Shown piece after piece: positions 23,961-49,919 of a stretch of 64,000 nucleotides of DNA (its first letter is position 1; each line of letters begins with the position of its first letter). The position numbers and the translations under genes are program-made. This DNA comes from Tubulanus polymorphus (lineage: Eukaryota; Animalia; Nemertea): NCBI RefSeq assembly GCF_964204645.1, contig NC_134031.1, positions 868,001 to 932,000 of the forward strand, given 5' to 3'. Under the pieces are notes generated by a model. It was not told the DNA's origin, searched no databases, and saw only the letters and a program-made list of their open reading frames with translations.

Positions 23961-24963
23961 CAAATATGCACTCGTATTTTTCAAAAAGTAGTTTTAATGT
24001 TTCTGTGACAAGCACATTCGGCGAAAATATTGAAGTCGCAACGCATTCAAACAGTCAACCACGAGTTTTACGAATTATTAATAGCTTTTGTCTACTAATT
24101 TAATAGTCGAAGTCACCGGAAGTCGGGATTGTTTTATAAGCACGTGCTTCCATTGGATGTCGTTTCTAATATACATGTAATATACATAGCCTAAGCACAG
24201 GGGAAGGATGAGGCGATCCTGGAGGACAAATCAGAAAAACAGCTCTACATTTCTGTAGATACCACAAACTAGCTTTCAGAAAAATCGGAGGAAATTTCTT
24301 GGACAACAAAATACATGTATCTTAACGACCATGTTATTACAAGCATTTTTATCGTATACACAGCGTCCCCATTCTCACCAACTTACAAAACTAAATTGAA
24401 GTCTTTCGCATGTTAAAAATTTATCAGAGAAAGTAACCATAAAATTGTTCATAAATCGGATATTTTAATGGTAAAAACTCATGTGATGATATGTGAATAC
24501 AACTTGAATACGGTGTTTGTGTCTTGGTAAAAAATTAAGAGCAAAAACAAAACAAGGGATAGGAAGCCAGTTTTAGGCAGATTTCGATTGAACGCGTCAT
24601 CACCGTGAAGAAATGTTGTAATGTCTATTGACACTGATGTCTTTCCCAATCGAGAAACGACTTTTATCTTTATAGTCCTTCTTTTACAAACACCGGACTG
24701 TTATCATCTTCATAACCTTTCTACAACTCTAATCATCTTTACAGTCCTTTTACGATACTAGACTCTTATCATCTTTATCGGACAAGCCTTAACTAACCTG
24801 TCTCAACGAGAGTCAAAAACCCACACGACGAGACATGGCTGAACGCGTCAAGATCCAAACAAAGACTGCTACGCTGATTACACGTGACCAGTGTGAAAAA
24901 AGAACAATTGAAACCTGCCTAATTATAAGCGTGCTTGCATGTAGATGTAAAAAGGCGACAATT

Positions 24964-27900
24964 CTATCCGGAAACGATGTTAGGATGAACGGCTGTTATT
25001 GAAGTAATCGACCGTGGAGTGGCTGAACCAAAATCCGATTCAGAATCGGACATGTCTTCTGAATTGTCTTCTGTTGTGAATTCGTGTACTTTAGTTTGTT
25101 GGAACGGAGGTTTTTTCAGCAATCTGATTATCAGAAATATCGGTCCGATCAGAAGAACCAGAGCACCCATAGCAGAACCAACTGCAACTGCTATTACAGG
25201 GAATGCATCTACCGGTGCATCAGTAGCGGCGAGTGTGGTGATCACTGAAATATGATTATAACATAGTTTATACCTAGATGAGGAGGCTTCATTAGCCTTG
25301 CATCATTCAATGTTTCCAGTTTGAGAGAAAGTACAACATGCAGCACAAACGTTTTTATCACAAATAATTTTCACAAATAATGTTCTAGTTTACCTTTGGA
25401 AGTTGTCTGTTTAGAAATTGTTTCTGATGCGGTTGTTGATAATGTCGTAGTTGGCATAAGTTGCTTCAGTGTCCCGTAAACCTGAACCTCACAGACAGTA
25501 AGAGGGCTCCCGATAGAGTTCTGTTTCATCAACACGACATACCGACCTACAGCACCAGGTGGACATTCTATCAGCATAATCTGACCTTCTTTTAATTGAG
25601 AAATTGTGCCACAACTTGTGAAATTTCCAGGTTTTCTAGGTGTTGTTGGTGCTACAGTTGATCCATCTGTTGTAGTGGTATCATCATTAACAGTAGATGT
25701 TGCGCTAGAAGTTCCAGACGTTTGACCGGTGTTAGGATCAGTAGACGTTGTGACAGATGAACTTGAACTTGCTGTCGAGGTTAGATCTGATGCTGATGAT
25801 GATGTTGATGCTTCTGACAATGTTGTATCTTGTATTGAAGTCGGGCTTTCTATAAGCAAAACATCAGTGTTGTTTTCATTTACCTATCATTTACGAAGGC
25901 CCAAACAATTTCGAATTTTACGTTCAGAATAGAAACTGATACAGCTTAAGTAATAAGTGTCAATTGATTTCAAGGAACTACGGAGTTCGTAGAAGATTAC
26001 AAATAACCTCTTATAAACATAGGCAAATAATTTCCAAAGAGGAACTTTTTTTGCATCCAGTGCAGGTCATTACTGATGTAAAGGAAAAATGATAAGGAGG
26101 ATTATATTTTCCTCCTCCATGAGGACCTACCAGGAGATGTTGACGCGGTCTCTTCATCTATTGGGTTTATGTTGTACAGATCACTTGGTAAAAATTCATC
26201 CACGACAAAGATAGTAACGTTCGAAAAATCTGATCCTGAAAATGTACAAACATTCGGAATCTTGAGGACTGAAATATGTCGTGCCATAACGAATTAACGG
26301 AGCCAAATTAGAATTTTTGATATGTGTACCATAATTATCTGCGACATTTGTAACGACGACTTTCTCAACTTGATAAACATTCACCAGAAACACGGCCCAC
26401 CATTCAGTTCTGTGGACACCAGCAGTGCGAGAACATTTGGTATATTTGGATTCGATATTTCCATCAGTGGCCAAATCACTTGTTAAATTCGACGTTGTTG
26501 AACTTTGAGATGTCGATTTATTCAATGCCAAATTTTCTACAGTATTCTCTGGAAATTAAGAAAATTTGATGTTTTACTTAGGTTTCATATTTTCATCTAA
26601 ATAGACATTTTCAAAACGAACTTTTGAGGCCGTCTAATAAAAATGTTTGACAACCAATCGTTACAGTTCTAATCGTTACCACATTGACCTGACAAACTTA
26701 CAAACCCAGTCAATCACTACGACTCCGTGGTCCAGTGGTAAACACGCTCACCTGGTTTGCTAGCGGTCCCTGGTTCGAGTCCAGCTGGAGAGCTATAGCA
26801 ATTCTTTTTTGTGAAAATGATTGGAGGGAAATTTCCATTTGGGAATTTAGAACTGCCCCTGAAGATGCCTTAGATGGAGCTACCTGGAATTTAGCAATAC
26901 CTTTTGTGGCATTGTACACATATCCCGCTACTTCCACTTCACACAATACGATAGGATTAATTCGACTCCGTTTTACTATTGATAAATATCGGCCCCAGAT
27001 ATTCGGTTGGCATCGTGTTTCCTGAACCTCAGTTGTTACGTAGTTAGTCGCGGTATCCTGTGTACAGTAAAAGCGAGAAGTTCGGTTTGTGTCAGAGTCG
27101 TGCCATTTCGGAGACAACCATATCTCATAATCCGTTAGCCATACATCTGTAGAAAATAAAAGGAACTTATGCAGACAAAGTATGAAGCTTTTCTTAAGAA
27201 CAGACATTCAAACTTACTTCCAATGCCATCCGTATTTATTATAACAACTTGTTTGACTTTATATTCAATCTCAAGATCGACGCTCCACCATATCGTCTGT
27301 TCGTCCTCGTTAACGGTTATCATGGTGCAGCGTGACATATCGTAAACGCCATCGGCTGCCAGGTTTGATAGTTCTCCGCCCTCAGCGTGATCAGATTGTT
27401 TACAGTTTTTACCAACTGCAGCGTTCAGTACGACATCTGTAATGCAAGTTTTGTCACGATTTCTTTTTCTAATTCTTCGTGGTCATTTTCATTGATGCTA
27501 CGATTGAACTGCATTTCATCTTTAAAAAAACGTTAAATAAAGACCTCATACCTTTAGAGCATTTATCGATAATACAGAATTCCCAGCGTGATCCCGTAGT
27601 TTGATAACACCAGGGGAAATTTTCATCCAAACGTCGGCAGTAATTCTTTGCCGCTATGTGTGACTGTTCAGGAAAATCTTTCGATTTTGTATCGAATGGA
27701 TGCGATTGCGGTTTCTGTCTATTCCAACGTTGACATTTGTTTCCTTTTTCTGTCTGGCTTTGTGTTCCGTGATATTCGACGCCTTCTGATGTCCATACAC
27801 ATTCTTCCCCTGTTACCAGATAGATATTATAAAATGTTTTAAATTTAACATTAAGTTTTCATTTCAATTTTCTATAAATTGAGATACATCGATACTCTCC

Positions 27901-30900
27901 AACACCAAATGTGATTGGCAGAGTCTATTTTGTCACTCGTTTGATGGGATGCAAGGAAGGCTGTAACTAAAAGCACCTCGGATGGCTTTAGAGGTTGGTA
28001 CCGCTGGTTCCAATTAGCTGAAAATTAGGAACCAACGTGGTGGATAATCTCACTGATAAGAACAAGCCTATACCATAAAAGATACGACAAAAGATTTTAC
28101 CGAATGCTTCTGTTCCATAGATGTCTATTTCACAGATAACCAGTGGACTGGGATGAACTGGTTTGTAGACGAAAACATGCGATGCCATCACTGGTTTTAT
28201 GCATTTCACCTCCGTAACCGAGTCTGTAGAGATTGTTACGTCATCTGCGCATAATTTCAACTTGCCGGATGCTCGACTGGACGACACCTTTGCAGGCGCC
28301 AAGTCAACGAAATCGACCGAAGTGTAAATATGAATATCTTCTTGGGCTTTAAGCGGAAAATATAGAATACAATTTTATTCCCACAATTAAAAAGTAGAGG
28401 GGTCCGAATTGTTACTTGAGCAAATATGTCTATCAGGAAACATTTCTGACTCTTTTTTCCATTTATTGAAGGATTTGATATCATATATCTTTCAACACCG
28501 ACTCATTTAACAACCGTTTTATTGAATAAAGCTTAGAATACAATACATTTACCTCACACATTATGTCAGGATGTAAACGCCGCACATAATGATTGATACT
28601 CACTACAACAGTTTTCAGGTCCGAAGAATCGGATTTTTCGTACAAAATAAACCGCATGGTACAGATCTATAAACCAATATCTATCATGGCTAGTATAACA
28701 AGAGACAGGCGGAGGTGCTTTAGTTAATTCTACGGTTGCAGCGCGTTCTTTACGTGGTACTATTCCATCCAGCGCGAGATGTCCGCCATTTCTAACTGCT
28801 CTGAACGGCTGAACGGCTATATTACCTAAATCAAGATAACACAAGTCAAATTTTCGATGTTCTCTTTTCACAAAATGGGGATGATGATAACATTAGCTAG
28901 AGGCTCATGTAATTCGGGAGTTTGTGTTGCGATACTGTGGAGGTGCTTCCTACAGCTGCTAAAAGTATGATATATGAAATCCCACACTTACGTGTGTAAT
29001 GAAAAATGTAGTCCAAAATGCTCGTAGTATTCTTCAGGAATACTTAAGTTATGATAAATCACTAAGCAATCCTTTTCGGACTCTTTTTTCTTTTTGTTAG
29101 GATTTCAGATTATAGTTATATAACATGGACAGTGATTTTCGTCAATGCTTATCATAATGATATTACATATTTGACGTAAAAAGGCACTGTTACTTTTTAC
29201 TTCAGTTAGCTGTGTGCTTTGATGTCAAATGTGACGCCAGGTGCATACGTACCCCTGTATTTAGACTTCACGGTATAAACGGAACGTTGGAATGACCGCC
29301 CCGCAAGATGAGTCGCATGCATGTGTATCAGAGCTACAGTTTTACTGATGAATTACCTGTGTGTTTTGCGCTGTATATCTTCACTTCTCTAAAGACGAGT
29401 GCACGAGTTCTTGGTTGTGTGATTTTGACAAATTTACCTCGACGTATCGGGTTACAGGGTACCTTCCTAGTTTCCAGCGACCTCACAATATTATTTCCCT
29501 TGTCATCGAAACATAACTCGTAGTTTGAATTATCTTCTGATACATCGATTGTCCATTCCCACGACATACACGGCGCTAGTTCTATACAAATATTAGATAT
29601 TAGAATATTAAACAACTATTTCATATTGAGGCGGCCATCCTGGTCCATGCGCTTGTACGGCGGCCATCTTAGGTTCATGAACAAATGCGGCCATGTTGAC
29701 TCAAGCTTGGCTTCTGGTCATTTTGGCAAAATGTCAGTAGTTAAAGTCAAAATCATTTCGATATCATTGCATACATTCATCAAAATCCAAGAAGATAGTA
29801 AAATATATGTTAACGATATGAATGTTTTTTGCGATGCATTAATTTCACTGTCTGTAGTTTGATTATCGATGACTTACGTATCGGTTTTTCACAGTAATAT
29901 ATATGATCGCTGCCTGTACATGAAATATCGTTCCATCTGCCTCTTGAGTCTCTATTCGTCACACAATCTTCACCAGATTTATCGTTCGGTTCATCGTCAT
30001 CCCAGTTTAAGAAGCGCGGCTGAAATATGAATCTCAGCATCAGCTTCGAAATGATTATATATATTATACCACTGATTATACTGTACCGGTTTCGTGTCGG
30101 AATTCCAAACAAACTTATTTTCATCCTTGATATCATTTAATCCTATGGTAAAGCTATTCGAATTATCAGCTGCAATGAAAAAAAAATTAAACATCTTGGG
30201 TGAAAAATGGAATGAACTCTCAGTGAGTGCATGTTTTTTACCCAGGAAGTCTAGAGTACATTTTGTCTATGACGCCTCAATAGAGTATGAATTCGATTTA
30301 GGATTTTAAACGATTTCATGTTTAATTTACGGAAAGTAGATATGCTATAAAAAGAAGCGGGCGCCGAATATCGAGTCAAGTATAACATACCCTGAAGCCA
30401 TTTCCACGTCTCCCAGTTTCTAATTGTTATAAGTTGGCCTCCTTTCTTCTCACATTCAGTCCTGGCCTCATTAGCATTCAACAACTTCTTCGAAAATGAA
30501 GCCAAACACTTTTTATTACTGGGATCTAGTTTCCAGTCCGGATCGTTACCACATGGATAGTTGTCCAATTCTGTATTGAAACGGTCGACATAAAATAAAT
30601 AAGTTTCTAAAATGAATTATTTAAATTTTCTCTCTGCATGACTCATCGAAATCTACCAAAAAGTACAGTAAAACTGACCGCGGTGACGACCAACTCTTTT
30701 GATTAATTCGGACAAAATATTTCAACTTTGTAAAACGTATAATTCGATCATTATCTCGGCCGGTGTCCGGTGATTGGCTGAGTTAGGCGAGGTTTACTGT
30801 AAAAATCTAGTTTAGCTATACATTATATGATATAAAGTAGATGACAATCTTAGCAGTCGATCCAACGGAATAAAGACTCCAAAGTTTAATCATTAGTGAA

Positions 30901-33900
30901 CAAAACGACATCCTAGGTACGTAGATATTATGTCAGTCCTTGCCCATTCTGACGATAACAAATTTCCTCAATGTTTTGTATTATGCAATGTTCAAAATAG
31001 AAATATCTCACCATTGTTTGTACATACAGGCATCTGTATAGAGACCCATGCGACATCTATTGTAAATGCCAATTCAACTTTCCACCAATTAGGACGTATT
31101 GTGACCGTTCGTAACGTCATCGAAAATCGTGATAGAAAGTCTGGATGCACATCACCATCGATAGCATTATCAGCCTGATAATGCGAGTAAGTCGTGAATT
31201 GAGATGCTTTTCCGGTTACCGCAAAATTACCTTTGGGAAAATGAGCCATGAGATGCTGATGAAAATTTACCGACAAAGACCACAACTCATTGAAATTTGT
31301 CGACTAAACATAGGAATAAGAAAGTTTACACTTTTTGATCAACGCCACATCAGTCTGGTGAATTCCTTTATTGGAAATGTCGCTATGATATTTTCCTACA
31401 TGTGAAAACTAAAGAACGTAGCTAAATGAATACCTACCATCAAATGGGAGGCCATATACCTCAAGCTCAGCAAGATTCAGTGCTGCAGTAGGACCACTGA
31501 TATCCTCTATATAAACATATACATATCTACCAAGATTTCCACGCGTACAGTGCAGGATTAAAGCGTGATTTTTAGCTATTACTGTCGCTTTTTTATTCTG
31601 GTAGCACATTCTACAGTGATTGAAGTCAACAGTATTGAGATCCGGATGTCGATAGCAAACTGCAACTTTTTGATGAACGCTTCCAGCTAAAAATGATGTC
31701 GAGAATATGGTTTGATTAAAAATAAATAGGGAGGTACTATATCATTCTAAACCCAGACATGATAGGATATGTTAACCTAGTATAAATCCTGTTAACACGA
31801 AAAGTAGTCGTATGTGTATGAGAAATTACGAGCTTTCGCTGTTAGTGTAAACAGTAGGCAGGTAATTTGGCAGGTAAACGGGTAGTACTGTGTAGATGAT
31901 GCGAGGACGCCTTTGGATACTTATGCCTCTCGTAGCTTGATAGGGTAAATGAATTTTTATGAAACGCCCAGACAGAAATAACGAAAGATTTCTAATAAAA
32001 TCAGTTAACCTACAAAATACTACCTCTGTTTTTCACGTTAAATGATTCTACATGAAGTTCAGTGATTGTTTGTTGGAAAATCTAATAAATAGTTAACCTG
32101 TTCCACCCGACATTAGTTTTCCAATACCATTCGATCCTGTTATCAGAACAACAGTTTTGATATTGAACCAGCCAGAAAGATCGACTACAATGAAATCCAC
32201 GTTGCTGCTGCTGGACCCTGTATATTCCGTATCCCTCCGGCCGTCCAGCATCGGACTGACAACTGTTCCCGATTCTGGTCCGTACCATTGATCACCACCG
32301 ACCATTATTCTACGACCTAACGCGAGGTTTTCTGGAACAAGCAAAATTAAAGCAATGTAACCAACTTTGCTACAAATGCAGAACATATCATTAGAGGTCA
32401 TTAATACACAATACTATTATATTACAATCCCCATTCTTATTTATTGTTGTTTGAGTCATTTTATTTCGTTTTCTTTCCGTTTGTTTCTGTTTGCGGTGTT
32501 TATGATATTCTATGCAAATAAAGATGACAGTTTTAAACGTACATCCGGCGGGCACCAACTACTCACAACGATACAGCAGACTTAATCAACAGCCGAAATA
32601 GCTCAGTTGGGAGAGCGTTAGACTGAAGATCTAAAGGTCCCTGGTTCGATCCCGGGTTTCGGCAAATTCTTTTCCAAAAAGATGACTTGAATTATTTTAT
32701 AAGCTTTAATCTATATTCTCTTACCACCGATTAACGGGTTCCCATACACCTCTACCTCACATAGAGCTAGTCGAATCGACGGCTGATCCAGACCCTGTTG
32801 GATGACTACGTGTCGACCGATTTCATTGGTTAATATCAGAAAATTTTCGCCGAATCCTATGAGACCAGTTTTTCGGAAAAGGAATTTCACATCGAAGTCT
32901 GTTGGTTTTATTAGCTGTCCGTGAAACTCAGTAGTCAAATAACCCTCTAGGTACGACATTCTGTAGTCTGCAGATAAACAACAACATTACAGATACAAAC
33001 ATTTCATGTGATAAACTTCCCAAAATTCAAGGAATCTGATAGAATACGAATTCATAGAAATATTTGTCTTTTTCGATTTGTAGGATACAGATCCTCTTGG
33101 TCTGGTATCGCAGAGTGGGTAGTCAAGAGTAAATCTTCGACCTCAGTGACAAACACAATAGAAATAATTAAAAAAACTGTCGTAAAACTGACAAATTATT
33201 CTCGGAGATTATTTGCCCCAATTTCAATGAAATTCCACTCATGTATAAAAACGATTTATCTTTATTGGAAATCATCTAAATGTTTTCTCTTCCCTGAATA
33301 ATCTATAAAACAGAAAACAACTAAACCTGCGAGTGGAGTGGCGCTTGCGACGACGATTACTTTACGAATGTGATGTAGTTTCGCTAAGTCAACGTGCCAC
33401 CAATTCTGTTTCGCGTTATCAGAAACTGCACAGATTGAGTAGAAACTGTTATAATACGAATCAGGTTCAGTTTGTCGACTCGAATCGACGGCTAATGCGG
33501 GCACTAAATTTGCTTCATTGCCATTAACTCGGAATTGTGCAGACTTTCGAGCTGCTAAGTTTTCTGAAAATGAAGAAAAATCACTGGTTCGGTTATCAGT
33601 TATCAGTTATCCGATTTTTAAACTTCCACTAACAATAGGTTTGAAGGATAACTATGTTTTCCATCGGTGAAAGTAGTTATGAAGTTATTGCAATGAGCGC
33701 AGTTGAGGTTCGTACAAAAAACGGTATAGAGATAACGAACAATCCCATGTAAAAATAACGTAAGAGACAATGAAAATCCCATCATCGATGATTATAGCAG
33801 AGATTGATTTAGTGAGATTGTTCATAAGCTTCTAAACTGCGAATACATCAGTTTATGAAATAATCAAAATAAACATGGCGCTGATTTACCGAAACTATTT

Positions 33901-36642
33901 CGCGAATAAACTTCAACTTCACAGATGGAAAATCCGTATTTTTGTTTCGTTATTCGTCGAATGATGACGTAACGACCGGAAGCTTCAGATGTACAGATAA
34001 ACCTCGTGACTCGTCCCGTCACTAGTTCACCGACGTCACACAACGTGTAATTATCTGGATTCGCTTCTAATGCGTTTTGAAATAGATCCGTAACGATCAC
34101 CTCGACGTATTCGTTACTGAACGCTGAAAAAAACGTGCAGAAATTATAATTATTACATACAGTTGATCTGTCGCACAGCGCGTCATATTGGACGTCACTC
34201 AACTAATTCCACCGCACGTGACGCGGGGAAACCCTCGGAAACATGTTTCTGTCTCCCGTTTCCATGTTCTACATGTGTCGTATGTGTTGAGCTTGCAGTA
34301 GTAACAAATTGACTGTCATGTCTGTGTTGACGGCAAACAATAAGTGTTTCATGAACCTCAAATAAGATCTTACTTCACTTATATATTTACCACCTCAGTT
34401 AGTGCATATGCGCAACATGAATAAATCTGTCTCAATTACTATCGCCAGTATCTAACCGAAAGGTGGCCTTACAAGTCACTCAGCGTACTTACAAAACTGA
34501 AATTCAGTTCGTTATTGCGATACAGTAATATTGGCCGTCAATATTGTGACTTCCTACTTACAATTAGTCGCTCGCACTTGAGGCCAATATGACGCACTGT
34601 GACATCATGTGCATACATAAAGAGGTCGAACAGATGACGTCACGGTTTGTTGGTGAAAACGTAACAACAAAAAATTTGATTCACAGATTTCGGAGGAACT
34701 GCCATGAAATCACCACCAATATGGCGTCGGTCACGTGATCAAAACACGTGAATGCACGACCTCAATACGGATATAAGAATTTACCATTCTGACGAGCTAA
34801 AACGAGCACTTCTCTGATATCATACGATTCGCCTAGATCCAGATACCACCAGGCCCAATCCCACCAATCAGGTTTAGCCTCAGAACACGAGTACGGTTTC
34901 GAGAACGCTTCCGGTTCGTGGCGACCATCGATTGCTAGTTCCGGTCCCATGTTCGATGTGGATAGAGGCGCCATGTACGCTTTTGTAAACAGATTTATGT
35001 TTTCTGAAATAATTCAATACATTTCAATAAGTATAGATATATTTAAAGGAATCGTGATAACCCGGTGTAACAGTTAACGTGAAAACTAGTAGTACTTTGT
35101 AAGTTTACTGAAATCATATAGTTTTCGTGTGCTAGTGCACAGAGTAGCTTTATCGGGTAAATGATGGGATTTTGATGAAGCTACTGCTATACACTGTATG
35201 ATGCTCGTTTCGTAATAAGGTCAGTTAACCTACACAGTTACCTTTTTTCAATCCTTATTACCTTATTATCTATTATTTATTATTAACGAAAAAAATTAAG
35301 CATATTTTAGAATTAATAGAATTAATAGAATTAAGCATATTTTTATACTGTATATAAAATTGTTTTTTCGTTAATATAGCTACTTATAACCTACACAGTT
35401 CTACCTGTCTGCTCGCTTATTGATTAGATCTAAATTTCTAACTATTCAATTGTCCGTTGATCGTTGAATAAATTACCTCCAATTTGTTTTGAATTGAGCT
35501 GCGGTGCTGAAATAGAGGACGCACAAACGAATTGAGATTCAAATTTCATACGAATAAAAATGAATGCGATTTTTTCTTAAAACTTACATTTCAATGTATA
35601 AAGCCAGTCCCACCAGACTCGTGTGTTAGTTGATGGAACGGGAAGTGATGGGTATAAGATACAACCGCCAGTTTTTGCATCAGTTTTAATTCCGGCCAGA
35701 AATGCTTTACACCTTGGAACCTCACTACATTTCTGTTCACATCGATCGAACGTCCAAGACCTATAACCCCCTAAATGGGCCACTCCAGTGTACGACTGAT
35801 GTGCGGTGTAGTTTGACCGTAACTCTTAAAAGAAGACAACTACATGAGACGAAAAGATACACAATATCCGTGTATGATGAATAACGGAAGAAATCCCGCA
35901 GTAAATTCATTGGCTGAATTTGTAGTGGGATTTCTCTCGTTAAGACAGCTAGATATAACCGACAAATAATCTTCACTCCGAGTGTAAGGAACGGCCTCAA
36001 TGGTTACCTCTTCTATTAAACAAAGTTCGATCATTTCGTATGGTTGATGTGCCGCATCTCGGGGCACTTTTAATATAACATTTACCGGTACTTGGGTGAA
36101 GGATAAATAGATCACACCGACTGTCAATATCGCAGTAATAACGACATTCGTCAGGAGTATGAATTGTTATCATATATAAATCTTTCGCGTAGCATTCACT
36201 TTTAACAAGTCGTGAGTATCCAGCAAAATAGTTAGCTGAAAAATAAACGAAATGTAATAATTTGTTTTTTTAGAAATCTACAAAGCAGGATCCAGTTTTA
36301 TAAAAATGATTAAAAACTCTAAAATCTAGATACGAATTAGACGTTTTTGTGACATTGTGGCCTACATTTTACACAATTACACTTCCATACTTACATCATC
36401 AATTAAATAATCAACTATAAACAAACAAACTTTATTTATGAGAGGTGCAGCTATCCAGTTCATAACTCAAAATGTATCGATTCATTATACTGTATGTACG
36501 GCTTACGAACATAAGATATACATATATACTACTATTATAATCGAAATATTCGACAGTAAGACAACTTACAATCTAAACTGACTCCATTTTCCACGATGAT
36601 TAACGCTATGAACGAATGAATCGCGAATAATAAGTTGTTCAT
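24964..36642 (-). CDS. Mosaic type-I membrane lectin receptor, copy A (~1694 aa): SP-PAN-PAN-FTLD x3-FTLD[nested C-type lectin]-FTLD-kringle-FTLD-FTLD[S/T insert]-TM-acidic tail
   Basis: 24 exons: 36570-36642 (MNNLLFAIHSFIALIIVENGVSLD), 36008-36235, 35588-35824, 35477-35506, 34785-35003, 33890-34123, 33327-33563, 32725-32967, 32098-32331, 31438-31686, 31012-31230, 30391-30570, 30087-30169, 29878-30019, 29357-29581, 28604-28825, 28101-28346, 27552-27809, 27218-27436, 26901-27146, 26330-26548, 26131-26235, 25394-25849, 24964-25244. They sum to 5085 nt in one open frame. FTLD motifs ENLA..K, A.DG, WW.VDL, GRYV, LCEVEVY; CTL IGLND..E, EPN, WND; kringle Y.G..S.T..G..CQRW, NYCR, PWCY, WEFC. Confidence 0.88.
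26721..26793 (+). mobile_element. tRNA-derived SINE head or tRNA pseudogene in an intron of copy A
   Basis: A-box tggtccagtgg and B-box ggttcgagtcc at tRNA spacing, poorly paired anticodon arm, downstream T run; not present in the matching intron of copy B. Confidence 0.55.
32592..32664 (+). tRNA. tRNA-Phe (GAA)
   Basis: GCCGAAATAGCTCAGTTGGGAGAGCGTTAGACTGAAGATCTAAAGGTCCCTGGTTCGATCCCGGGTTTCGGCA: canonical 73-nt metazoan cytosolic tRNA-Phe, followed by TTTT. Confidence 0.98.
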
Positions 36643-37775
36643 TTTTCATAAAGAAATCTTCGTGATCCTTGGTGGCAGAACTTCACATAGCAAAATACAA
36701 AAACCAAATGTGTCGATCTTATATCACTAGGGCGACTGCGCAGTTCCTTATTTGGAATACCGGTCGAAAATTGATAACAGGAAAAATTATTCTTACGTAT
36801 TTTTAAACTTGCCGATGGCCTCCACGAGCATATTCTAATCTCTTTACTGCTGATCCTCCCCGAGGTGAGATCTTTATTCAAATAAATGCATGTATTGCGG
36901 GCTGTATAAAGCAAATTATCATTTTCGACGAGGAACCAAATACATTTTCTAAAACCTACGTTAAAAAGTCTACCAATCACTAATAGTCTCTTCAATAATA
37001 GTCTTTTTTCCTCCCATAAACACTTCTGAAAGATTATCAAATGCATACTACTATTGAATTCTAATGGTAAATAGTTCTATAATCTTCCCGTTTCATATTA
37101 CAAGGGTGAACATTCTATTCTTTCAATCTTCATTTCATGCTAGTTTCTTTATGTCCACGAGTAAAAACGATAGCAACAAGAAGAGTTGCGCAAACTGTTC
37201 GAGACTCGTAATTCATGTAATTAGTAACCAATACATCACAGATCTATGAAACCAATCCTCAACTTTTACCTTTTAATTGGTGTAAAAAAAAGTAACGTAT
37301 ATTTTGTAGTAAGTCGTGATTATATTTCATCTCTTTTAATCCATCGTACATCATTTACAAAATTATAGTTGTTCATACACAACTCGTATATTTCAAAACT
37401 CAAAAACATGTTTTGATGGAAGTATCTTAGTACAAATTGAAGCCAGACCAAGGCAGGTCGCGATAACCGATTCCAGATAACTCTTTAACTACCGCTTATA
37501 TCAGGTTAATAAACTATAACGATAATAATGATGATAATAATAATTATAATAATTGTTATTATAATTATTCATTCTCTAAGGGCAATCAATACAAAAACTC
37601 CGAACGAATTTCAATCAGTGCACTGTTCTAGAAAAGATAGAGCTTATTCTGGTCGAAACGAACGTACGAGAGGAGATCGGTAGAAACCTGCCGTATTGTA
37701 TGTGTGCGAATACAAATGTGAGTCTTATAAACACTTTTACAGTTGCTAGTGCTAGACGTGATTTTGGTTTTTTTT

Positions 37776-40700
37776 CTATCCGGAAACGATGTTAGGATGA
37801 ACGGCTGTTATTGAAGTAATCGATCGTGGAGTGGCTGAACCAAAATCCGATTCAGAATCGGACCAGTCTTCTGAATTGTCTTCTGTTGTGAATTCGTGTA
37901 CTTTAGTTTGTTGGAACGGAGGTTTTTTCAGCAATCTGAGTATCAGAAATATCAGTCCGATCAGAAGAACTAGAGCACCCATAGCAGAACCAACTGCAAC
38001 TGCTATTACAGGGAATGCATCTACTGGTGCATCAGTAGCGGCGAGTGTGGTGATCACTGAAATATGATTATAACATAGCTTATACCTAGATGAGGAGGCT
38101 TCATTAGCCTTGCATCATTCAATGTTTCCAGTTTGAAAAGCACCATGAAGATTTTATTAATGATCATTTCATTCGTACTCAAGCGTATATCTAAATTATT
38201 ATTTATTATTTTGGTGAATCTAATTTTAAGAAAGCGCGAAGATTCAGCATTCTAATGAGTCCTGGTTCTACACTCAGCGTTCTAATGAGTCCCAGTTCTA
38301 CACTCAGCGTTCTAATGAGTCCCAGTTCTACTCTCAGCGTTCTAATGAGTCCCAGTTCTACACTCAGCGTTCTAATGAGTCCCAGTTCTACACTCAGCGT
38401 TCTAATGAGTCCCAGTTCTACACTCAGCGTTCTAATGAGTCCCAGTTCTACACTCAGCGTTCTAATGAGTCCCAGTTCTACACTCAGCGTTCTAATGAGT
38501 CCTAATCCTACACTGAATTAATGAAGTCTTTTTGATAGTCTTTTCATATAATCTTTTTAGATTTACCTGTGAAGGTTGATTCTGATGCGGTCGCTGATAA
38601 TGTCGTAGTTGGCACAATTTTCTTTAGTCTCGTGGTTGTTGATAATGTCGTAGTTGGCATAAGTTGCTTCAGTGTCCCGTAAACCTGAACCTCACAGACT
38701 GTAAGAGGGCTCCCGATAGCGTTCTGTTTCATCAACACGACATACCGACCTACAGCACCAGGTGGACATTCTATCAGCATAATCTGACCTTCTTTTAATT
38801 GTGAAATAGAGCCGCAAGTTGTAAAATTTCCAGGTTTTCTAGGTGTTGTTGGTGCAACAGTTGATCCATCTGTTGTCGTGGTATCAGCATCGTTAACAGT
38901 AGATGTTGCGCTAGAAGTTCCAGACGCTTGACCGGTGTTTGGATCAGTAGACGTTGTGACAGATGAACTTGAACTTACTGTCGAGGTTAGATCTGATGCT
39001 GATGATGATGTTGATGCTTCTGACAATGTTGCATCTTTTATTGAACTCGAGCTATCTATAAAAAAACATCAGTTTTGTATTTTGCGTCAAAGTTTGTTGC
39101 AGCTTAACCTTATACAAACATAACTGATTTTTAAGTGGATTATTTCCATAAGGAATTTGTTTGCGTAAAGTGCAGGTCAATATTGGTGTGAAGAAAAAAT
39201 AGTCAGAAAAAAAAGAAAAAAAAGCAGGATGACATTGTCCTCCTCGGGAGGACCTACCAGTAGATGTTGAAGTGGTCTCTTCGTCTATTGGGTACAAGTC
39301 GTACAGATCACTTGGTAGAAATACATCCACGACAGAAATAGTAACATTGAAAAAATCCGATCCTAAAAAAATGTACAAATATTCGAAATCTAAATTCTAC
39401 AAATATTCGATATTCAAATAACTGAACTACGAAGAGCCATAACGATCTTACGGAGGCACATTTGATTTAATTTTTGATATGTGTACCATAATTATCTGCG
39501 ACATTTGTAACGACGACTTTCTCAACTTGATAAACATTCACCAGAAACACGGCCCACCATTCAGTTCTGTGGACACCAGCAGTGCGAGAACATTTGGTAT
39601 ATTTGGATTCGATATTTCCATCAGTGGCCAAATCACTTGTTAAATTCGACGTTGTTGAACTTTGAGATGTCGATTTATTCAATGCCAAATTTTCTACAGT
39701 ATTCTCTGGAAATGAAGAAAATTTGATAGATAATCTACTTTTGACTAGTACTGCTATCTTAATAAGCTAGGGTTCTTTTGTGAAAATCTTTTGAGAGAAA
39801 TCCCCTGGCCTCTCCAGTCGTGAACTAAGAACTGCTCTTGAAGATCCCTTGGATGGAACCACCGAAAAAAGCAATACCTTTTGTGGCATTGTACACATAT
39901 CCCGCTACTTCCACTTCACACAATACGATAGGATCAATAATTTGACTCCGTTTTACTATTGATAAATATCGGCCCCAGATATTCGGTTGGCATCTTGTTT
40001 CCTGAACCTCAGTTGTTACATAGTTAGTCGCGGTATCCTGTGTACAGTAAAAGCGAGAAGTTCGGTCTGTGTCGGAGTCGTGCCATTTCGGAGACAACCA
40101 TATCTCATAATCCGTTAGCCATACATCTGTAGAAAATAAAAGGAACTTATGCAGACAAAGTATGAAGCTTTTCTTAAGAACAGACATTCAAACTTACTTC
40201 CAATGCCATCCGTATTTATTATAACAACTTGTTTGACTTTATATTCAATCTCAAGGTCGATGCTCCACCATATCGTCTGTTCGCCCTCGTTAACGGTTAT
40301 CATGGTGCAGCGTGACATATCGTAAACGCCATCGGCTGCCAGGTTTGATAGTTCTCCGTCCTCAGCGTGGTCAGATTGTTTACAGTTTTTACCAACTGCA
40401 GCGTTCAGTACGACATCTGTAATGAAAGTTTTGTCACAATTTCTTTTTCAAATTCTTCGTGGTCATTTTCAGTTATGCTACGATTGAACTGCATTTCATC
40501 TTTAGAAAACATTAAAGACCTCATACCTTTAGAGCATTTATCAATAATACAGAATTCCCAGCTAGATCCCGTAGTTTGATAACACCAGGGGAAATTTTCA
40601 TCCAAACGTCGGCAGTAATTCTTTGCAGCTATGTGTGACTGTTCAGGAAAATCTTTTGATTTTGTATCGAATGGATGCGATTGCGGTTTCTGTTTATTCC

Positions 40701-43700
40701 AACGTTGACATTTGTTTCCTTTTTCTGTATGGCTTTGTGTTCCGTGATATTCGACGCCTTCTGATGTCCATACACATTCTTCCCCTGTTACCAGATAGAT
40801 ATTATAAAATGTTTCAAGTTTAATATGATGTTTCCATTTCAATTTTCTGTACATCAAAGCCCTCCAACCCCAAATGTGATTGGCAGAGTCTATTTTGTCA
40901 CTCGTTGATGGGAAGGATGCCTGGAAGGCTGTATCTAAAAGCACCTAAGATGGCTTTAGGTTGTATGTCAAAGCTTCTGGGATGGTATTAGGTGTTAGTA
41001 CAATGCTCCAATCAGTGAAGAATTAGGAACCAACATGGCGCATATTCCCATTGATAGTAAATGATACGACAAAAGATTTTACCGAATGCTTCTGTTCCGT
41101 AGATGTCTATTTCACAGATAACCAGTGGACTGGGATGAACTGGTTTGTAGACGTAAACATGCGATGCCATCACTGGTTTTATGCATTTCACCTCCGTAAC
41201 CGAGTCTGTAGAGATTGTTACGTCATCTGCGCATAATTTCAGCTTGCCGGATGCTCGACTGGACGACACCTTTGCAGGCGCCAAGTCAACGAAATCGACC
41301 GAAGTGTAAATATGAATATCTTCTTGGGCTTAAAGCGAAAAGAAAACATTCGACCACAAAAACAAGTAGTGAGGTCCGAAATGTTTCTTTGAGCAAATAT
41401 GTCTACCAGGAAACATTTCGGAGTCGTTATATCATCATTAAAACATCGACACAGAACGTTTCATCGAATATAGGTTAAAATACGATGCGTTCAAATCACT
41501 TCAGGATGTAAACGCCGCACATAATGATTGATACTCACTACAACAGTTTTCAGGACCGAAGAATCGGATTTTTCGTACAAAATAAACCGCGTGGTACAGA
41601 TCTATAAACCAAAATCTATCATGGCTAGTATAACAAGAGACAGGCGGAGGAGCTTTAGTTAATTCTACGGTTGTAGCGCGTTCTTTACGTGGTACTATTC
41701 CATCCAGCGCGAGATGTCCGCCATTTCCAACTGCTCTGAACGGCTGAACGGCTATATTACCTAAATCAAGAAAGCACATGTCGAACTTTCATTATTTTTT
41801 TAACTACAGAATTAAAAGGAACTTAAGCAAGAGCATGGACGTAAAAGAGTCCGTGGCTAGAGGGACATGATGTAAGCATTTAAATGAAGAGGCTTCGTTG
41901 CGATAGTGCGGAACCCCAGTAGAGTGAGTTTGTGGCTCGACCAATGGCTTCCTGGAATAGACGTGAAATGGTTCCCAAATTGTGACGTTTTACTTCAGTT
42001 ATCCGCGTGCTTTGACGTCAAATATGACATATGACGTCAGTTGCACCGTCTTCCCGCAAGATGAGTCGCATGCATGTGTATCAGAGCTACAGTTCTACTG
42101 ATGAATTACCTGTATGTTTTGCGCTGTATATCTTTACTTCTCTAAAGACGAGTGCACGAGTTCTTGGTTGTGTGATTTTGACGAATTTACCTCGACGTAT
42201 CGGGTTACAGGGTACCTTCCTAGTTTCAAGTGACTTCACAGCATTATTTCCCTTGTCATCGAAACATAACTCGTAGTTTGAATTATCTTCTGATACATCG
42301 ATTGTCCATTCCCATGACATACACGGCGCTAGTTCTATACAAAATGAATTGGGTCATCTCGACCATCTTGCACTTGGCCATCTTGGGTTCATTCACGTAT
42401 GCGGCGATGTTGGTTTTAATCACATCATGCAAGAATTCGGCAATGTATCAGTGGCTAAGGCTCAAATGATTTTGCCGAGTTATTGCGTCTATTCTCAAAA
42501 ATCCAAGATGCCAGTTTTAATCCAAATCCGAAATCCAAGATGGCCATCCTGGTCCATGCGCATGTTAGGCGGCCATTTTGGGTTCATGAACAAATGCGGC
42601 CATGTTGATTCAAGCTTGGCTTCTGATCATTATGGCAAAATATCAGTAGTTAAAGTCCAAATCATTTCGCTATATCATTGCATACATTCATCAAAATCCA
42701 AGAAGGTGGCCAAATATATGTTAAAGATATGAATGTTTTTGCGAGGCATTAATTTCACTGTCTGCAGTATGTTATTATTAATGACTTACGTATTGGTTTT
42801 TCACAGTAATATACATGATCGCTGCCTGTACATGGAATATCGTTCCAACTGCCTCCTTGAAAATTCGTCACACAATCTTCATTATTTTTATCGTTCGGTT
42901 CACCGTTGTTCCAGTTAATGAATCGTGCCTGTAATGTGAATCTAAGCAAAACTATTCCTATCAGCTTAGTAAAGATTATATATGTATCGTTCATATTGTA
43001 CCGGTTTTGTTTCGGAATTCCAAACAAACTTATTTTCATCCTTGATATCATTTAATCCTATGAGATAGCTTCTCGAATTTTCGGCTGCAATGAAAAAATT
43101 ATACATCGTGGGTCAAACATGGAATACTCAGTGGATGCTGGTCGGTGAAATTGTTTACCTACAGCGGGCGCCACTTTATCTATGACGCCCCAATATTTGT
43201 GTTGAATTCGATACTGGATTTAAGACGACGCCTTGTTGAACCTTCGAAATTTCATGTTTATTTCACGGAAAGCAAATATCATAAATACAGTAAAAATCAA
43301 ATAGCGAGTCATTTAAATCATAAGTACCACATCTACATGTACAACATACCCTGAAGCCATTTCCACGTCTCCCAGTTTCTAATTGTTATAAGTTGGTTTC
43401 CTTTCTTCTCACATTCAGCCCTGGCCTTATTACCATTCAGCGCCCTCTTCAGAATAGAAACCAAACACTTTCTATTACCAGGATCTAGTTTCCAGTCCGG
43501 ACCTTTACCACATGGATAGTTATTCAATTCTGTATGGAAATGGTCGATATAATGTAAAGCTTTTAATTATTGCGATGTTCGTGTGTTTTCTGCCTTATTC
43601 ACTATGATTTGCCGAACAGTAGAATACAGTAAAGCTGAACTTTTAGTGATTCGGACAAAAATTGAATCATATTCTGACTTCCGATTGGATCGTCGGATAG

Positions 43701-46700
43701 TCGCTTATCTCAGACCCAATTTAATCGGTTTCCATTCGTTGGATGAGTTAGGTGAGGTTGACTGTAAATCTAGTTTAGAAGTCGGAAGTACTCTTAGCGT
43801 TCAACGTAATAAATATCTTAAAGATTTTAAAGGTAGAAATTCTGTGAACAAGAAAACAACCAGAAGCAGCTACTATGGATTTAATCACCATCAGATATCT
43901 CACCATTGTTTGTACATACAGGCATCTGTATAGAGACCCATGCGACATCTATTGTAAATGCCAATTCAACTTTCCACCAATTAGGACGTATTTTGACCGT
44001 TCGTAACGTCATCGAAAATCGTGATAGAAAGTCTGGATACGCATCACCATCGATAGCATTATCAGCCTGATAATGCGAGTAAGTCGTGAATTGAGATGCT
44101 TTTCCGGTTACCGCCAAATTACCTTTGGGAAAATGAACCATGGGATGCTGATGAAAATTTACCGACAAAGATTATAATGATTCGAAATGTATCGAGTACA
44201 ATGAGGACTTGGAAATAAAAAGATGACGCATTTTGATTGATGCGACATCATTAACGTTGATCTCTGTATAAGAAAAGTTGTAATGTTTTCTCCTACATAT
44301 AAAACTAAAGAATGTAACTAAATAAATACCAACCATCAAATGGGAGGCCATATACCTCAAGCTCAGCTAGATTCAGTGCTGCAGTAGGACCACTGTTATC
44401 CTCTATATAAACATATACATATCTTCCAAGATTTCCACGCGTACAGTGCAGGATTAAAGCGTGATTTTTAGCAATTACTGTCGCTTTTTTATTCTGGTAG
44501 CACATTCTACAGTGATTGAAGTCAACAAAGTAGAGATCCGGATGTCGATAGCAAACTGCAACTTTTAGATGAATACTTCCAGCTACAATAAAAAAACGAG
44601 GGGGTTTGATGTATATTGAATAAATACGGAAAAAAAGATAGTACATTCATATCAGGTAAACAATCGTACAAAACGCCAAAGCAGGTAATACTATGTAGAC
44701 TACTTAATGTTGTTGGATATAACGAGCTAGGGCAGTGTCCTTCCTGATACCAGGGAAAACTGTCTGGAGCTCCTCGATTCCTACGACCGCCGTGAATCCC
44801 AAAGTTCACGGCATTCCATTGACAAACGTGTTAGATGTTTTCCTACGCATGATTTGTGGAAAAGCGTATTTCTGTTGTGGGCACTCACCCGATGGTCTGT
44901 GATCGTCATACATACTCTTGGCCCAGTTTCCTGAGAAGTTATTGGTGGTCACTACATCATCACTCCACATAGTTGTACCATGCACTCTGCCTTGTCTCTG
45001 TACCTTACTGTATACGTGCGCTGTTTCATTGAACGCTTCACGCTTGGCAATTACTTCCACTTAGCCTTCTTCGAGAGCGTGTTAGCTTTACTGGCCTTAA
45101 GTTCTCTCACCTCAACTGTCATCCTATCAGCGTGCTTTATCCTGTTCCTAACCCTGGCATGTTTTACCGCTCTTCTGACCTTGGAGACTATATGTTTACT
45201 CCTGAATGAGTAGTTGAAACTCCCATACCTTTATTTGGTATTCTTCCCTGTGATTGAGGTAAGGGTCAGGCGTTGATCACTATCCATCACTTTTTCATCC
45301 ACTGTTGGCAACTAACATGCAACATTAGTTGGCCCATAGCTGGGGACAAGATTGGTGAGTGATTGGAATAATCAGACTGATCAAAGGTGAGTGCCAGGGC
45401 ATGCTGTCCAGTGCCAGTGGGCCATGCACATCACGGCTTTAGGTCTCAGCTTGCTCCGAAGGCAAATGAGTCCTTGATGGAGCTGTATTATATTTACTAA
45501 TAGCCAAATCTTGTAATTTCGAATAAAATCAGTTTAACCACAAAGTACTACCTGTTTTCACGTTTAAATGATTTGAAATGGAATCAATGGTTTTATTTTG
45601 GAATATCTGATTATCTAGATAGTTAACCTGTTCCACCCGACATTAGTTTTCCAATACCATTCGATCCTGTAATCAGAACAACAGTTTTGATATTGAACCA
45701 GCCAGAAAGATCGACTACAATGAAATCCACGTTGCTGCTGCTGGACCCTGTATATTCCGTATCCCTCCGGCCGTCCAGCATCGGACTGACAACTGTTCCC
45801 GATTCTGGTCCGTACCATTGATCACCACCGACCATTATTCTACGACCTAACGCAAGGTTTTCTGGAACAAGCAACATAAAGCAATGTTATAACCATTCTA
45901 ATTTCAATAACTTCTCGTCACGATCATTGTATGATTTATTGAATGAATATTATATGTGTGTAGTGGTCAGCGATTACTCACAACGATACGACATAGCAAT
46001 TCAATTCAAATATATTTAATCACCAGCCGAAATAGCTCAGTTGGGAGAGCGTTAGACTGAAGATCTAAAGGTCCCTGGTTCGATCCCGGGTTTCGGCAGG
46101 TGCGCATATTTTTTGTCATGTTGCCTTCTCTTTTGATACATGTAAATCGTGTTTCAAATTTTTTTCTGAATCGAAATACTGTCAAATGTCGGTATTCTCT
46201 TACCGCCGATTAACGGGTTCCCATATACCTCTACTTCACATAGAGCTAGTCGAATCGACGGCTGATCCAGACCCTGTTGGATGACTACGTGTCGACCGAT
46301 TTCATTGGTTAATATCAGAAAATGTTCGCCGAATCCTATGAGACCAGTTTTTCGGAATAGGAATTTCACACCGAAGTCTGTTGGTTTTATTAGCTGTCCG
46401 TGAAACTCAGTAGTCAAATAACCCTCTAGGTACGACATTCTGTAGTCTGCAGATAAAAATCGACATAGATACATTCATTTCATGTGATAATCTGATAGAA
46501 TTCTATTTCATAGAAATGCGTATCGTTCTATATACTCAAAAATGGCAACACACTTGTAAATTTCATCGACTCGGTATCATAGACATTAAAGTTACCCTAA
46601 ATACACCCCTGACCTCAACCTGGGCACGGTTTCATAGACAGGATACCAAAGTTACCCCGAGGGATACATCCTCAACCAGGGTGACAACCAATATAGTAAC

Positions 46701-49700
46701 AATGAGAAGCTATTGTAGTAATTGAGACGAATTTCCAAATTTCCCACTCATTAACATAACGCCTTCCACTCCTCCCTCCCATGTGAATGAAACACAGCCA
46801 AGGGACGCACGAAACCCTTTAGATGAAACCTAAAACTAATTGAAAAATAGATATATTCCCGTCGTACGTAATCTAAACGATTTCGTTACGTATTTGGATA
46901 TGTCCAAATTAACTCCAGAAAATCTACTAAACGAAAAACAACTAAACCTGCGAGTGGAGTGGCGCTTGCGACGACGATTACTTTACGAATGTGATGTAGT
47001 TTCGCTAAGTCAACGTGCCACCAATTCTGTTTCGCGTTATCAGAAACTGCACAGATTGAGTAGAAACTGTTATAATACGAATCAGGTTCAGTTTGTCGAC
47101 TCGAATCGACGGCTAATGCAGGCACTAAATTCGATTCATTGCCACCGACTCGGAATTGTGCAGACTTTCGAGCCGCTAAGTTTTCTGAAAATGAAGAAAA
47201 AATCACTGGTTCAGTTATCTGATTCTTAACCTTCCACTGAAAATAGGTTTAATGTATACTGATGACTATGTTTTCCATCATTGAAAGAATTTGCGAAATG
47301 ATTGCAATGAGCACAGTTGTGAGGGAGGTCGTGCAAAAACGGCATGGAAGATAATGAACGAACACAATCTGAAGTTCATTTTTGTCCGACAGTTTCGAGA
47401 TTTATTAAATCCCATTTTCACAGAAATCTTCAGAGAAAACAGTAATGAATATTGCTTTATAGAAATTCAAAAAGCGAAAATTGAAAAAAAAGCAAAAATT
47501 CGATTATTCCGTGATGAAACGAAGTCGCTTGGCTCAGTAGAAAATAAACATGGCGCTGATTTACCGAAACTATTTCGCGAATAAACTTCAACTTCACAGA
47601 TTGAAAATCCGTATTTTCGTTTCGTTATTCGTCGAATGATGACGTAACGACCGGAAGCTTCAGATGTACAGATAAACCTCGTGACTCGTCCCGTCACTAG
47701 TTCACCGACGTCACACAACGTGTAATTATCCGGATTCGCTTCTGCTGCGTTTTGAAATAGATCCGTAACAATCACCTCGACGTATTCGTTACTGAACGCT
47801 GAAACAAACGTGCGGAAATTATAATTATTACTTACCAGTTGATCTGTCGCACAGCGCGTCATATTGGACGTCACTCAACTAATTCCACCGCACGTGACGC
47901 AGGGAAACCCTCGGAAACATGTTTCTGTTTCCATGTTTCCATGCATCGTGTGCGTTGAGCTTTTAGAAAAATCAACAAGTCAGTGGGCAAAACAATAATT
48001 GTGACATGAATCACCGCAGTCAAACGTAATATTGGCCGTCACTTATTACTTGAATCAGTCACTCGTACTTAAGGCCATTGTGACAACACTATTGCATCAC
48101 GTGCATACAGGGTCAAGAACTTACCATTCTGACGAGCTAAAACGAGCACTTCTCTGATATCATACGATTCACCTAGATCCAGATACCACCAGGCCCAATC
48201 CCACCAATCAGGTTTAGCCTCAGAACACGAGTACGGTTTCGAGAACGCTTCCGGTTCGTGGCGACCATCGATTGCTAGTTCCGGTCCCATGTTCGATGTG
48301 GATACAGGCGCCATGTACGCTTTTGTAAACAAATTTATGTTTTCTGAAATAATTCAATACATTTCAATAAGTATAGATATATTTAAAGGAATCGTGATAA
48401 CCCGGTGTAACAGTAAACGTGAAAACTAGTAGTATTTTGTAAGTTTACTGAAAACATATAGTTTTCGTGTGCTAGTGCACAGAGTAGCTTTATCGGGTAA
48501 ATGATGGGATTTTGATGAACGAAAGAAGCTCGTATTTCTAATAAGGTCAGTTAACCTACACAGTTATCTTTTTTTCAATCCTTATTATCTGTTGTTTATC
48601 ATTAACGCAAATTATTAATATAGATTCATAGTTTAATATTACATTCAACTTTGTACTATTTCTTAAGTAACATTTTGTAAATTATTTTTAGTAGCAAATA
48701 AACTGTTTATGTACTTGCTAATAATGTCAAAAGACTTAAGCATATTTTTATACTGTATATAAAATTGTTTTTTCGTTAATATAGCTACTTATAACCTACA
48801 CAGTTCTACCTGTCTGCTCGCTTATTGATTAGATTTAAATTTCTAACTATTCAATTGTCTGTTGATCGTTGAATAAATTACCTCCAGTTTGTTTTGAATT
48901 GAGCTGCGGTGCTGAAATAGATGGCACACGAAGGAATTGAGAAAAACAAGAATTAATTCCATTTTACGAGTAAAAATGAATGCGATTTTCCTTTCCGCTT
49001 ACATTTCAATGTATAGATCCAGTTCCACCAGTTTCGTGAATCAGGAAATGCGATAGGAATGGATGGGTATAACAAACAAGAACCAGTTCTTGCATCATTT
49101 CTAATTGCAGACAGAAATGCTTTACACCTTGGAACCTCATTACATTTCAGTTCACACTTATCGAACGTCAAAGAGTTATATTTCCCTAGATGTCGCGAGT
49201 TAGTGTGCCTGCGATGTGCGGTGTAGTGTGATCTTAGCTCTAAATAGAAGAGAATGTATAGTAAAAATGGGCAAAGGATCTTTACCCCGAGTGAAACGGA
49301 ACTGACTTGATTGTAATTACCTCTTTTATTAAACAGCTTTAGATGATTTCGTAGATGGGGATTGCTGCATCTCGGCGCGCTTTTAATCAAACATTTCGTG
49401 TCGAAAGTAAGAAATAGATCGCATCGACTTTCAATATCGCAATAATAACGACATTGATCTGGAGTATCAACTATTTTCCTATATAAATCTTTCGCGAAGC
49501 AGTCACCTTTAACAAGTCGCGAGTATCCAGCAAAATAGTTAGCTAAATAGAAATACACGAAATTCATTCAGTTCGATTTTAAAGAAATCAACACAGTTTT
49601 GTCGAGATCTATAAAACTGATTAATAAATGTTCAATCGAGTTACGAATTAGACGTTTTTGTGACATTGTGGCCTACATTTTACACAATTACACTTCCATA

Positions 49701-49919
49701 CGTATATCATCAATTAAATAATCAACTATAAACAAACAAACTTTATTTATGTATCGATTCATTATACTGTATGTATGGCTTACGAACATAAGATATACAT
49801 ATACCACTACTATATAATCGAAATATTCGACAGTAAGACAACTTACAATCTAAACTGACTCCATTTTCCACGATGATTAAAGCTATGAACGAATGAATCG
49901 CGAATAATAAGTTGTTCAT
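37776..49919 (-). CDS. Mosaic type-I membrane lectin receptor, copy B (~1703 aa), same architecture as copy A
   Basis: 24 exons: 49847-49919, 49321-49542, 49003-49239, 48882-48911, 48125-48343, 47565-47798, 46948-47184, 46204-46446, 45628-45861, 44334-44582, 43904-44122, 43350-43529, 43002-43084, 42790-42928, 42110-42334, 41539-41760, 41083-41328, 40527-40784, 40198-40416, 39878-40126, 39487-39705, 39258-39362, 38567-39055, 37776-38056. All indels relative to copy A are multiples of 3. Confidence 0.88.
38243..38514. repeat. 30-bp minisatellite, ~9 copies (cactcagcgttctaatgagtcccagttcta)
   Basis: Near-perfect tandem array in the last intron of copy B only. Confidence 0.95.
46026..46098 (+). 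tRNA. tRNA-Phe (GAA)
   Basis: Identical to 32592-32664; T6 terminator ~11 nt downstream. Confidence 0.98.

Follow-up and report, generated by a model that had tools for sequence, protein, structure and literature searches.

Within a window of 64,000 nucleotides from the nemertean Tubulanus polymorphus (contig NC_134031.1, positions 868,001 to 932,000 of the forward strand; positions below are those of the window unless another contig is named), a reverse-strand gene that we call gene A has the exons of a C-type lectin domain (CTLD) lying between the two exons that encode the halves of a domain resembling an F-type lectin domain (FTLD), the fourth such domain of the gene. Insert and halves are coded on the same strand and in compatible frames, and the arrangement is found in three paralogues. 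Overall, we believe that linear splicing of these exons yields a nested protein, with the C-type lectin domain inside the F-type-like domain; as the most parsimonious product of the genomic sequence, this is probably what the gene makes. Exons were compared singly in searches of Pfam, the PDB and a protein library, and the splicing order was read from the genomic sequence.

The exons of domain 4 and their homology

Domain 4 of gene A is laid out in five exons, all on the reverse strand. The N-half exon (exon 1; 31012..31230, phase 1-1) carries NAIDG and WWKVEL, and its last residues, PVCTNN, fall in the loop named CDR4. Three middle exons follow, a cassette of 405 nt in total with phase-1 ends: cassette exon 1 (30391..30570, phase 1-1) has the long-form N-terminal Cys pair and helix 1, cassette exon 2 (30087..30169, phase 1-0) the IGLND...FVWN core, and cassette exon 3 (29878..30019, phase 0-1) the Ca2+/sugar site with EPN, Glu and WND as well as the last two of the six cassette Cys. 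The C-half exon (exon 5; 29357..29581, phase 1-1) opens with LAPC and carries RGKFVKI...REVKIY. An AG acceptor and a GT donor border all five of the five exons, and a single reading frame runs through them. The layout and phases that an earlier note on this DNA had described at 29357-31230 are thus borne out, and each FTLD and CTLD motif it quoted sits in the exon it named. Its statement that a second copy at 42110-44122 is built alike also holds: copy B, again on the reverse strand, has the same five exons (44122-43904, 43529-43350, 43084-43002, 42928-42790 and 42334-42110) with the same phases and all splice sites kept, and differs from A by one in-frame 3-nt indel. The introns flanking the gene A cassette measure 441 nt and 296 nt, and neither contains an open frame resembling a missing half-domain; missed exons that would complete each half separately, a possibility raised in the note, were therefore not found in these two introns.

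The outer exons look like two halves of one F-type-lectin-like domain, as had been claimed. Exon 1, with 72 in-frame codons, has six matches in the PDB, and all six are F-type lectin domains (3cqo, 4gwi, 2j22, 3le0, 1k12 and 2j1r): the best is striped bass FBP32 (3cqo_A, E 2.6e-8), and the others are fucolectin domains of Streptococcus mitis and S. pneumoniae and the eel agglutinin 1k12. Each of these alignments begins where the domain begins and stops at the strand that precedes CDR4, and in Pfam the exon matches positions 1-41 only of PF22633 (E 0.11). Exon 5 gave no match when Pfam and the PDB were searched directly. A full HMMER pass over a library of 1.84 billion proteins aligned it with the C-halves of PF22633/PF00754 domains in the proteins P0002 and P0003 (E 2.8e-5 and 3.4e-5), and in alignment with the C-halves of PF22633 proteins it fits the expected pattern C...C...GRYV...L.L.EV.VYG. 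The top of the four library matches, P0001, was set aside as a low-complexity false positive. Taken together, exons 1 and 5 are colinear with an uninterrupted relative and lack none of the domain (alignments A1 and A2). Judged by these comparisons, the homology of the individual exons exceeds chance.

The site of the split was placed by aligning residues 1-63 of exon 1 to chain residues 10-75 of 1k12 and extending the alignment without gaps, which brings the end of the exon to roughly position 84 of eel agglutinin, a point that lies between Arg79 and Arg86. In domain 5 of gene A, the last residues of the N-half exon are a vicinal CC comparable to Cys82-Cys83 of eel agglutinin, which fixes the family's intron to the same point in the loop. 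CDR4, which includes Arg79 and Asp81, is among the loops surrounding the fucose cleft, and in eel agglutinin Cys82-Cys83 contact the sugar (PMC5712786). Because CDR4 lines the fucose cleft, a split in this loop sets the insertion on the sugar-binding face, and we agree with the earlier note in placing it in the loop that holds the RxDxxxxR part of the fucose-binding site. The canonical triad His52/Arg79/Arg86, with its R-x-D-x4-R motif, is absent from domain 4: in the alignment itself the His position is occupied by Arg, in its ungapped extension Arg79 falls on Pro, and the region of Arg86 is replaced by the insertion and LAPC. The suggestion that the host domain's own sugar site has been replaced accords with this alignment, and domain 4 appears from its sequence to be F-type-like in fold, not a canonical fucolectin.

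The middle three exons, by the same kind of comparison, make up a complete long-form C-type lectin domain with a carbohydrate-recognition domain (CRD) of the mannose type. Cassette exon 3 aligns with the C-terminal 43 residues of the chain of rat mannose-binding protein A (MBP-A; 1msb_A, E 2.6e-9), and the alignment pairs the Ca2+-site-2 ligands of the exon (EPN, Glu and WND) and both of its Cys with those of MBP-A; all of these ligands are present in copies A and B, and the third paralogue, copy C, has Asp for Glu. Against Pfam Lectin_C (PF00059, cut-off 22.6 bits), cassette exon 1 covers positions 3-32 (20.9 bits, E 6e-4) and cassette exon 3 positions 70-107 (22.5 bits, E 2e-4), each of them slightly below the cut-off when taken singly. 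Cassette exon 1 also matches the CTLD of 9wyt_J in the PDB (E 0.005), in the N-terminal part of the domain, and cassette exon 2 has three weak PDB matches (E 0.6-0.9), all of them C-type lectins. Six Cys, the four of the core and the long-form N-terminal pair, are invariant in copies A, B and C, which argues for a domain of the long form. These exon-wise matches, with the EPN and WND motifs in place, support the intact C-type lectin that had been described across the three exons. Since all five Ca2+-site-2 ligands of MBP-A are retained, the insert is predicted to bind sugars of the mannose, N-acetylglucosamine and fucose type in a Ca2+-dependent manner.

Three copies, selection and the fold of the halves

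When each exon was searched against the complete assembly, exactly three loci emerged, and the nested order is the same in all of them. Copy C lies 7 Mb away on the same chromosome (G000:C7:7986803-7994922, forward strand), where order, phases and all splice sites are kept. In copy C, the intron that separates cassette exon 3 from the C-half exon has expanded to 6.5 kb (G000:C7:7988160-7994700), as against 296 nt in gene A, presumably through an inserted element; part of the N-half exon of domain 2 is duplicated at G000:C7:7978129-7978207. Across copies A, B and C, the cassette splice sites are kept in 18 of 18 cases and the frames are open, and each of the four indels among the three copies is a multiple of 3. 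Both linkers and the six Cys are invariant except for one Val/Phe change, and the two Cys that flank the insert are conserved in all three copies.

Substitution counts, pooled over per-exon codon alignments, indicate that the cassette is under purifying selection when compared with copy C. For the cassette, the A-C comparison has a synonymous divergence (dS) of 0.50 and a ratio of nonsynonymous to synonymous divergence (dN/dS) of 0.29 (Fisher p 1.3e-5), and the B-C comparison a dS of 0.39 and a dN/dS of 0.49 (Fisher p 0.009); for the flanking halves, the A-C and B-C values are 0.43-0.45 and 0.15-0.16 (Fisher p 1.7e-10 and 3.8e-10). Because the dS of the cassette against copy C is about that of the flanking halves, the insert predates the split between A/B and C. 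In neutral simulations at the observed divergence, the frame stays free of stops in only 3-6% of cases. The purifying selection, the in-frame indels, the conserved Cys and linkers and the rarity of stop-free neutral simulations together argue that the cassette is translated in this frame.

When the tandem copies A and B are compared with each other, dS and dN/dS are 0.154 and 0.92 in the cassette (Fisher p 0.85), and 0.065 and 0.32 in the flanking halves. The proteins of A and B are 94-97% identical in the domain 4 halves and 94-100% identical in the other half-exons compared, as against 70-81% in the cassette exons. At the nucleotide level their identity is a mosaic of 78-98% (24960-36500 vs 37770-49775), which suggests patchy gene conversion that spared the cassette. 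The A-B pattern fits either relaxed constraint on the insert or its diversification while the remainder was homogenised. It could also be taken to mean that the C-type lectin exons are a dead or decaying intronic remnant that is never translated, for no other part of the tandem pair has diverged as far as the cassette, whose dN/dS of 0.92 stands beside 0.32 in the flanking halves. Such a remnant is difficult to reconcile with the dN/dS values of 0.29 and 0.49 against copy C, with 18 intact splice sites of 18, with four indels that all respect the frame, with the lack of stops and with the retention of the six Cys and of EPN/WND; already disfavoured, it seems to us hardly credible.

The peptides of exon 1 and exon 5 were also predicted as two separate chains, without supplied multiple sequence alignments. 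The two-chain score was 0.49, as against 0.02 for the best of three controls, with an agreement between runs of at least 93% in contacts and a partner confidence (predicted local distance difference test, pLDDT) of at least 64. Among 78 solved complexes, 51 attain the mark set for this test, as do 2 of 108 mismatched pairs; at scores of 0.60 or less, it is attained by just 5 of those 78 complexes, and the four mismatches that pass (of 180) all fall in this range. The prediction thus lends weak support to the pairing of the halves into one barrel. If the gene is spliced as read and the halves nevertheless form no F-type fold, what is read as domain 4 would amount to a degenerate linker on either side of a normal C-type lectin. 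The loss of the fucose triad, the weak Pfam signal of the halves (E 0.11 for exon 1, none for exon 5) and the weak support from the fold test would all suit a linker of this kind. At the same time, purifying selection on the halves is strong (dN/dS 0.15-0.16 in the comparisons with copy C), the halves span the domain colinearly with nothing missing relative to uninterrupted relatives, and their two-chain score of 0.49 is to be set against 0.02 for the best control. We consider a degenerate linker unlikely.

Whole genes, splicing and a proposed origin

Gene A as a whole (24964..36642, reverse strand, some exon borders approximate) extends from a signal peptide to a transmembrane exon, and gene B (37776..49800, reverse strand, 5' limit approximate) is its tandem duplicate, with a period of ~12.9-13.6 kb. 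At the 5' end of gene A, the signal-peptide exon (36642-36570) is followed by two PAN domains and F-type-like domains 1-3; the centre holds domain 4 with the nested C-type lectin, domain 5 and a kringle (27809-27552); and domains 6-7, a Ser/Thr-rich stalk and the transmembrane exon (25244-24964) make up the 3' end. Pfam recognises PAN_1 (E 1.5e-4), Kringle (E 1.1e-14) and, on the N-halves of domains 1 and 7, PF22633. By their sequence, genes A and B and copy C are related genes for cell-surface receptors: each encodes a type I membrane protein in which these parts follow one another in the same order, with seven F-type-like domains, a mucin-like stalk and a short acidic tail. The cytoplasmic tail (24964-25130) has an acidic Ser-rich cluster (..EDNSEDMSDSESDF..) that is kept in all three copies and could be a sorting or phosphorylation motif. 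The C-half of domain 7 of gene A (26235-26150, 25849-25394) is interrupted as well: its first exon encodes the first strand (..NVTIFVVDE..), and the next one about 75 Ser/Thr-rich residues and then NFTSCG...EVQVYG, so that the same fold would have received a second insertion, of low complexity and in a different loop. Copies B and C have this interruption too.

All seven of the seven F-type-like domains are split into an N-half and a C-half exon by a phase-1 intron at the same loop, and genome-wide six-frame matches to PF22633 (n=125) nearly all end at profile positions 38-58 of 91, so that an intron in mid-domain is the rule in this genome. The exon borders of the gene that can be placed are mostly phase 1-1 (the candidates for the PAN2 acceptor and the domain 6 C-half donor are phase 0), and the phase compatibility of the cassette is therefore expected, not remarkable. 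This bears on a point made in the earlier note, namely that skipping of the 405-nt cassette, with its phase-1 ends, would restore an uninterrupted FTLD: phases and frame are as stated there, and the argument drawn from them is weaker than it seemed, since most placeable borders would behave likewise.

The same phases would permit the cassette to be an alternative one, its exons present in some transcripts only, with a major or co-equal isoform that joins 31012 to 29581 and encodes an ordinary, unbroken F-type-like domain whose CDR4 loop is short and bounded by Cys. Such usage overlaps with the nested protein, which would still exist beside it, and its product would be in frame given the 405-nt length, the phase-1 ends and the mostly phase 1-1 borders of the gene; moreover, the F-type lectin repeats of oyster bindin are alternatively spliced (PMC5712786). 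The introns that flank the cassette, on the other hand, are not unusually conserved (A-B ungapped identity 56-84%, with many indels) and so give no hint of conserved regulatory elements such as introns typically hold beside regulated cassette exons; the splice sites look ordinary. We regard a major or co-equal skipped isoform as possible though doubtful. A more radical departure from the genomic order would be a non-linear use of the exons, for example by mutually exclusive choice, in which the C-type lectin exons and the F-type-like halves never share one mRNA and a given product contains domain 4 or, in its stead, a C-type lectin placed in tandem like any other module. With exons uniformly of phase 1-1, the frame would be kept in such combinations, and FTLD and CTLD in tandem are the known arrangement (P0002; PMC5712786). 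It would require two coordinated, non-adjacent skips, however, and the cassette lies strictly between the halves in three of three copies, even where the intron has reached 6.5 kb, with both junction linkers conserved. We hold this kind of exon use to be very unlikely. An internal promoter or signal-peptide exon before the cassette was considered separately, and its sole candidate frame (30911-30816), which is not among the blocks conserved with copy C, was rejected.

Several observations weigh against the nested protein and should be read together. Of the four sequencing runs listed, none is on record as RNA, and the splicing order is inferred from the genome; two of the runs contain 0.38 and 0.35 of sampled words, near an exonic share of the stretch of ~0.42, and may be RNA or thin DNA. 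With mostly phase 1-1 borders, a cassette-skipping isoform or other exon combinations are by their sequence also in frame. Close relatives of exon 5 are absent from the library of 1.84 billion proteins, which thus offers no cDNA-derived or orthologous protein with the nested layout. Over the short interval that separates A from B, the dN/dS of 0.92 in the cassette is indistinguishable from neutral. Finally, the pass of the two-chain prediction may be a memory of solved F-type lectins, and is a likeness rather than proof.

The general course of the origin of this layout can be sketched. F-type-like domains in this lineage are each encoded by two exons, separated by a phase-1 intron in CDR4 at the sugar-binding end of the beta-barrel, and a three-exon, phase 1-1 C-type lectin cassette most likely entered the pre-existing intron of domain 4 through exon shuffling, its source being a C-type lectin gene with several exons. 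In the same genome, other genes for C-type lectins have an intron directly before the P.F.NW segment, as the cassette does, and this common position fits the shuffling of a multi-exon lectin unit at the DNA level. No close donor for the cassette was found in the genome; apart from the three copies, the best match there shows 47% identity. At G000:C9:13934001-13942000, C-type lectin units with EPN or similar motifs form a tandem array, which has the P.F.NW intron position in common with the cassette.

The N- and C-termini of a C-type lectin domain are adjacent, side by side. After linear splicing, the inserted domain would project from the CDR4 loop of the F-type-like domain, its base held by short conserved linkers (~8-9 residues) and by one flanking Cys on each side; we infer that these two Cys may pair as a clamp. 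The host domain, without its fucose triad, would act as a scaffold, and the insert is the fastest-changing module between the paralogues, as expected of a part that contacts ligand. One might go further and imagine a composite recognition unit, in which a Ca2+-dependent lectin is presented on, and perhaps cooperates with, the loops that are left on an F-type-like barrel (CDR1-3 and CDR5), the rest of the protein being homogenised by gene conversion while the insert diversifies. This last proposal is speculative and rather improbable; were it true, lectin-in-lectin nesting would have built a small variable glycan-receptor system.

Relation to known systems

The earlier note knew of no nested FTLD and CTLD, and the literature likewise yielded no report of one, within an open-access search that is hence not proof of absence. 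To our knowledge, mosaics of F-type and C-type lectins occur only as tandem arrangements, and the genes described here probably represent a new domain architecture within the known mosaic lectins. If the reading is true, both families gain a new architecture, a C-type lectin on the sugar-binding loop of an F-type-like domain. The genes would then also offer a clear natural case of domain insertion, in which a symmetric phase 1-1 cassette entered a pre-existing phase-1 intron in a surface loop, and the nested module would provide a natural template for the display of one binding domain on another. In this context, the concentration of paralogue-specific change in the insert makes a testable case of receptor diversification.

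Mosaic F-type lectins with FTLD and CTLD in tandem include Drosophila furrowed/CG9095, and F-type domains without the fucose triad are frequent (PMC5712786); a fish protein with FTLD repeats and a CTLD (P0002, by its Pfam domains) turned up in our library search with exon 5. The present genes resemble these in combining the same two families in one extracellular, often membrane-anchored protein. In the known mosaics, though, the domains are successive, whereas here the C-type domain would lie inside the CDR4 loop of the F-type-like one. Oyster bindin generates diversity by means of an intron that lies midway through each F-type lectin domain (PMC5712786). Every F-type-like domain of the present genes likewise has its mid-domain intron; in bindin that intron mediates recombination of half-domains, whereas here it hosts a foreign three-exon domain.

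The CRD of rat MBP-A (1msb) has EPN, Glu, WND and both Cys in alignment with cassette exon 3. It is a free, C-terminal domain on a collagen stalk, unlike the cassette domain, which would be tethered at both ends inside another domain and is of the long form with an extra N-terminal Cys pair. A further parallel is the alpha I domain of integrins, a ligand-binding domain that is inserted in a loop of the beta-propeller, on its ligand-binding face, and takes over the binding of ligand. Folds and lineage are unrelated, and there is no evidence here of allosteric coupling; the likeness lies in how the nested lectin module would work, as a binding domain set into a loop on the binding face of another domain.

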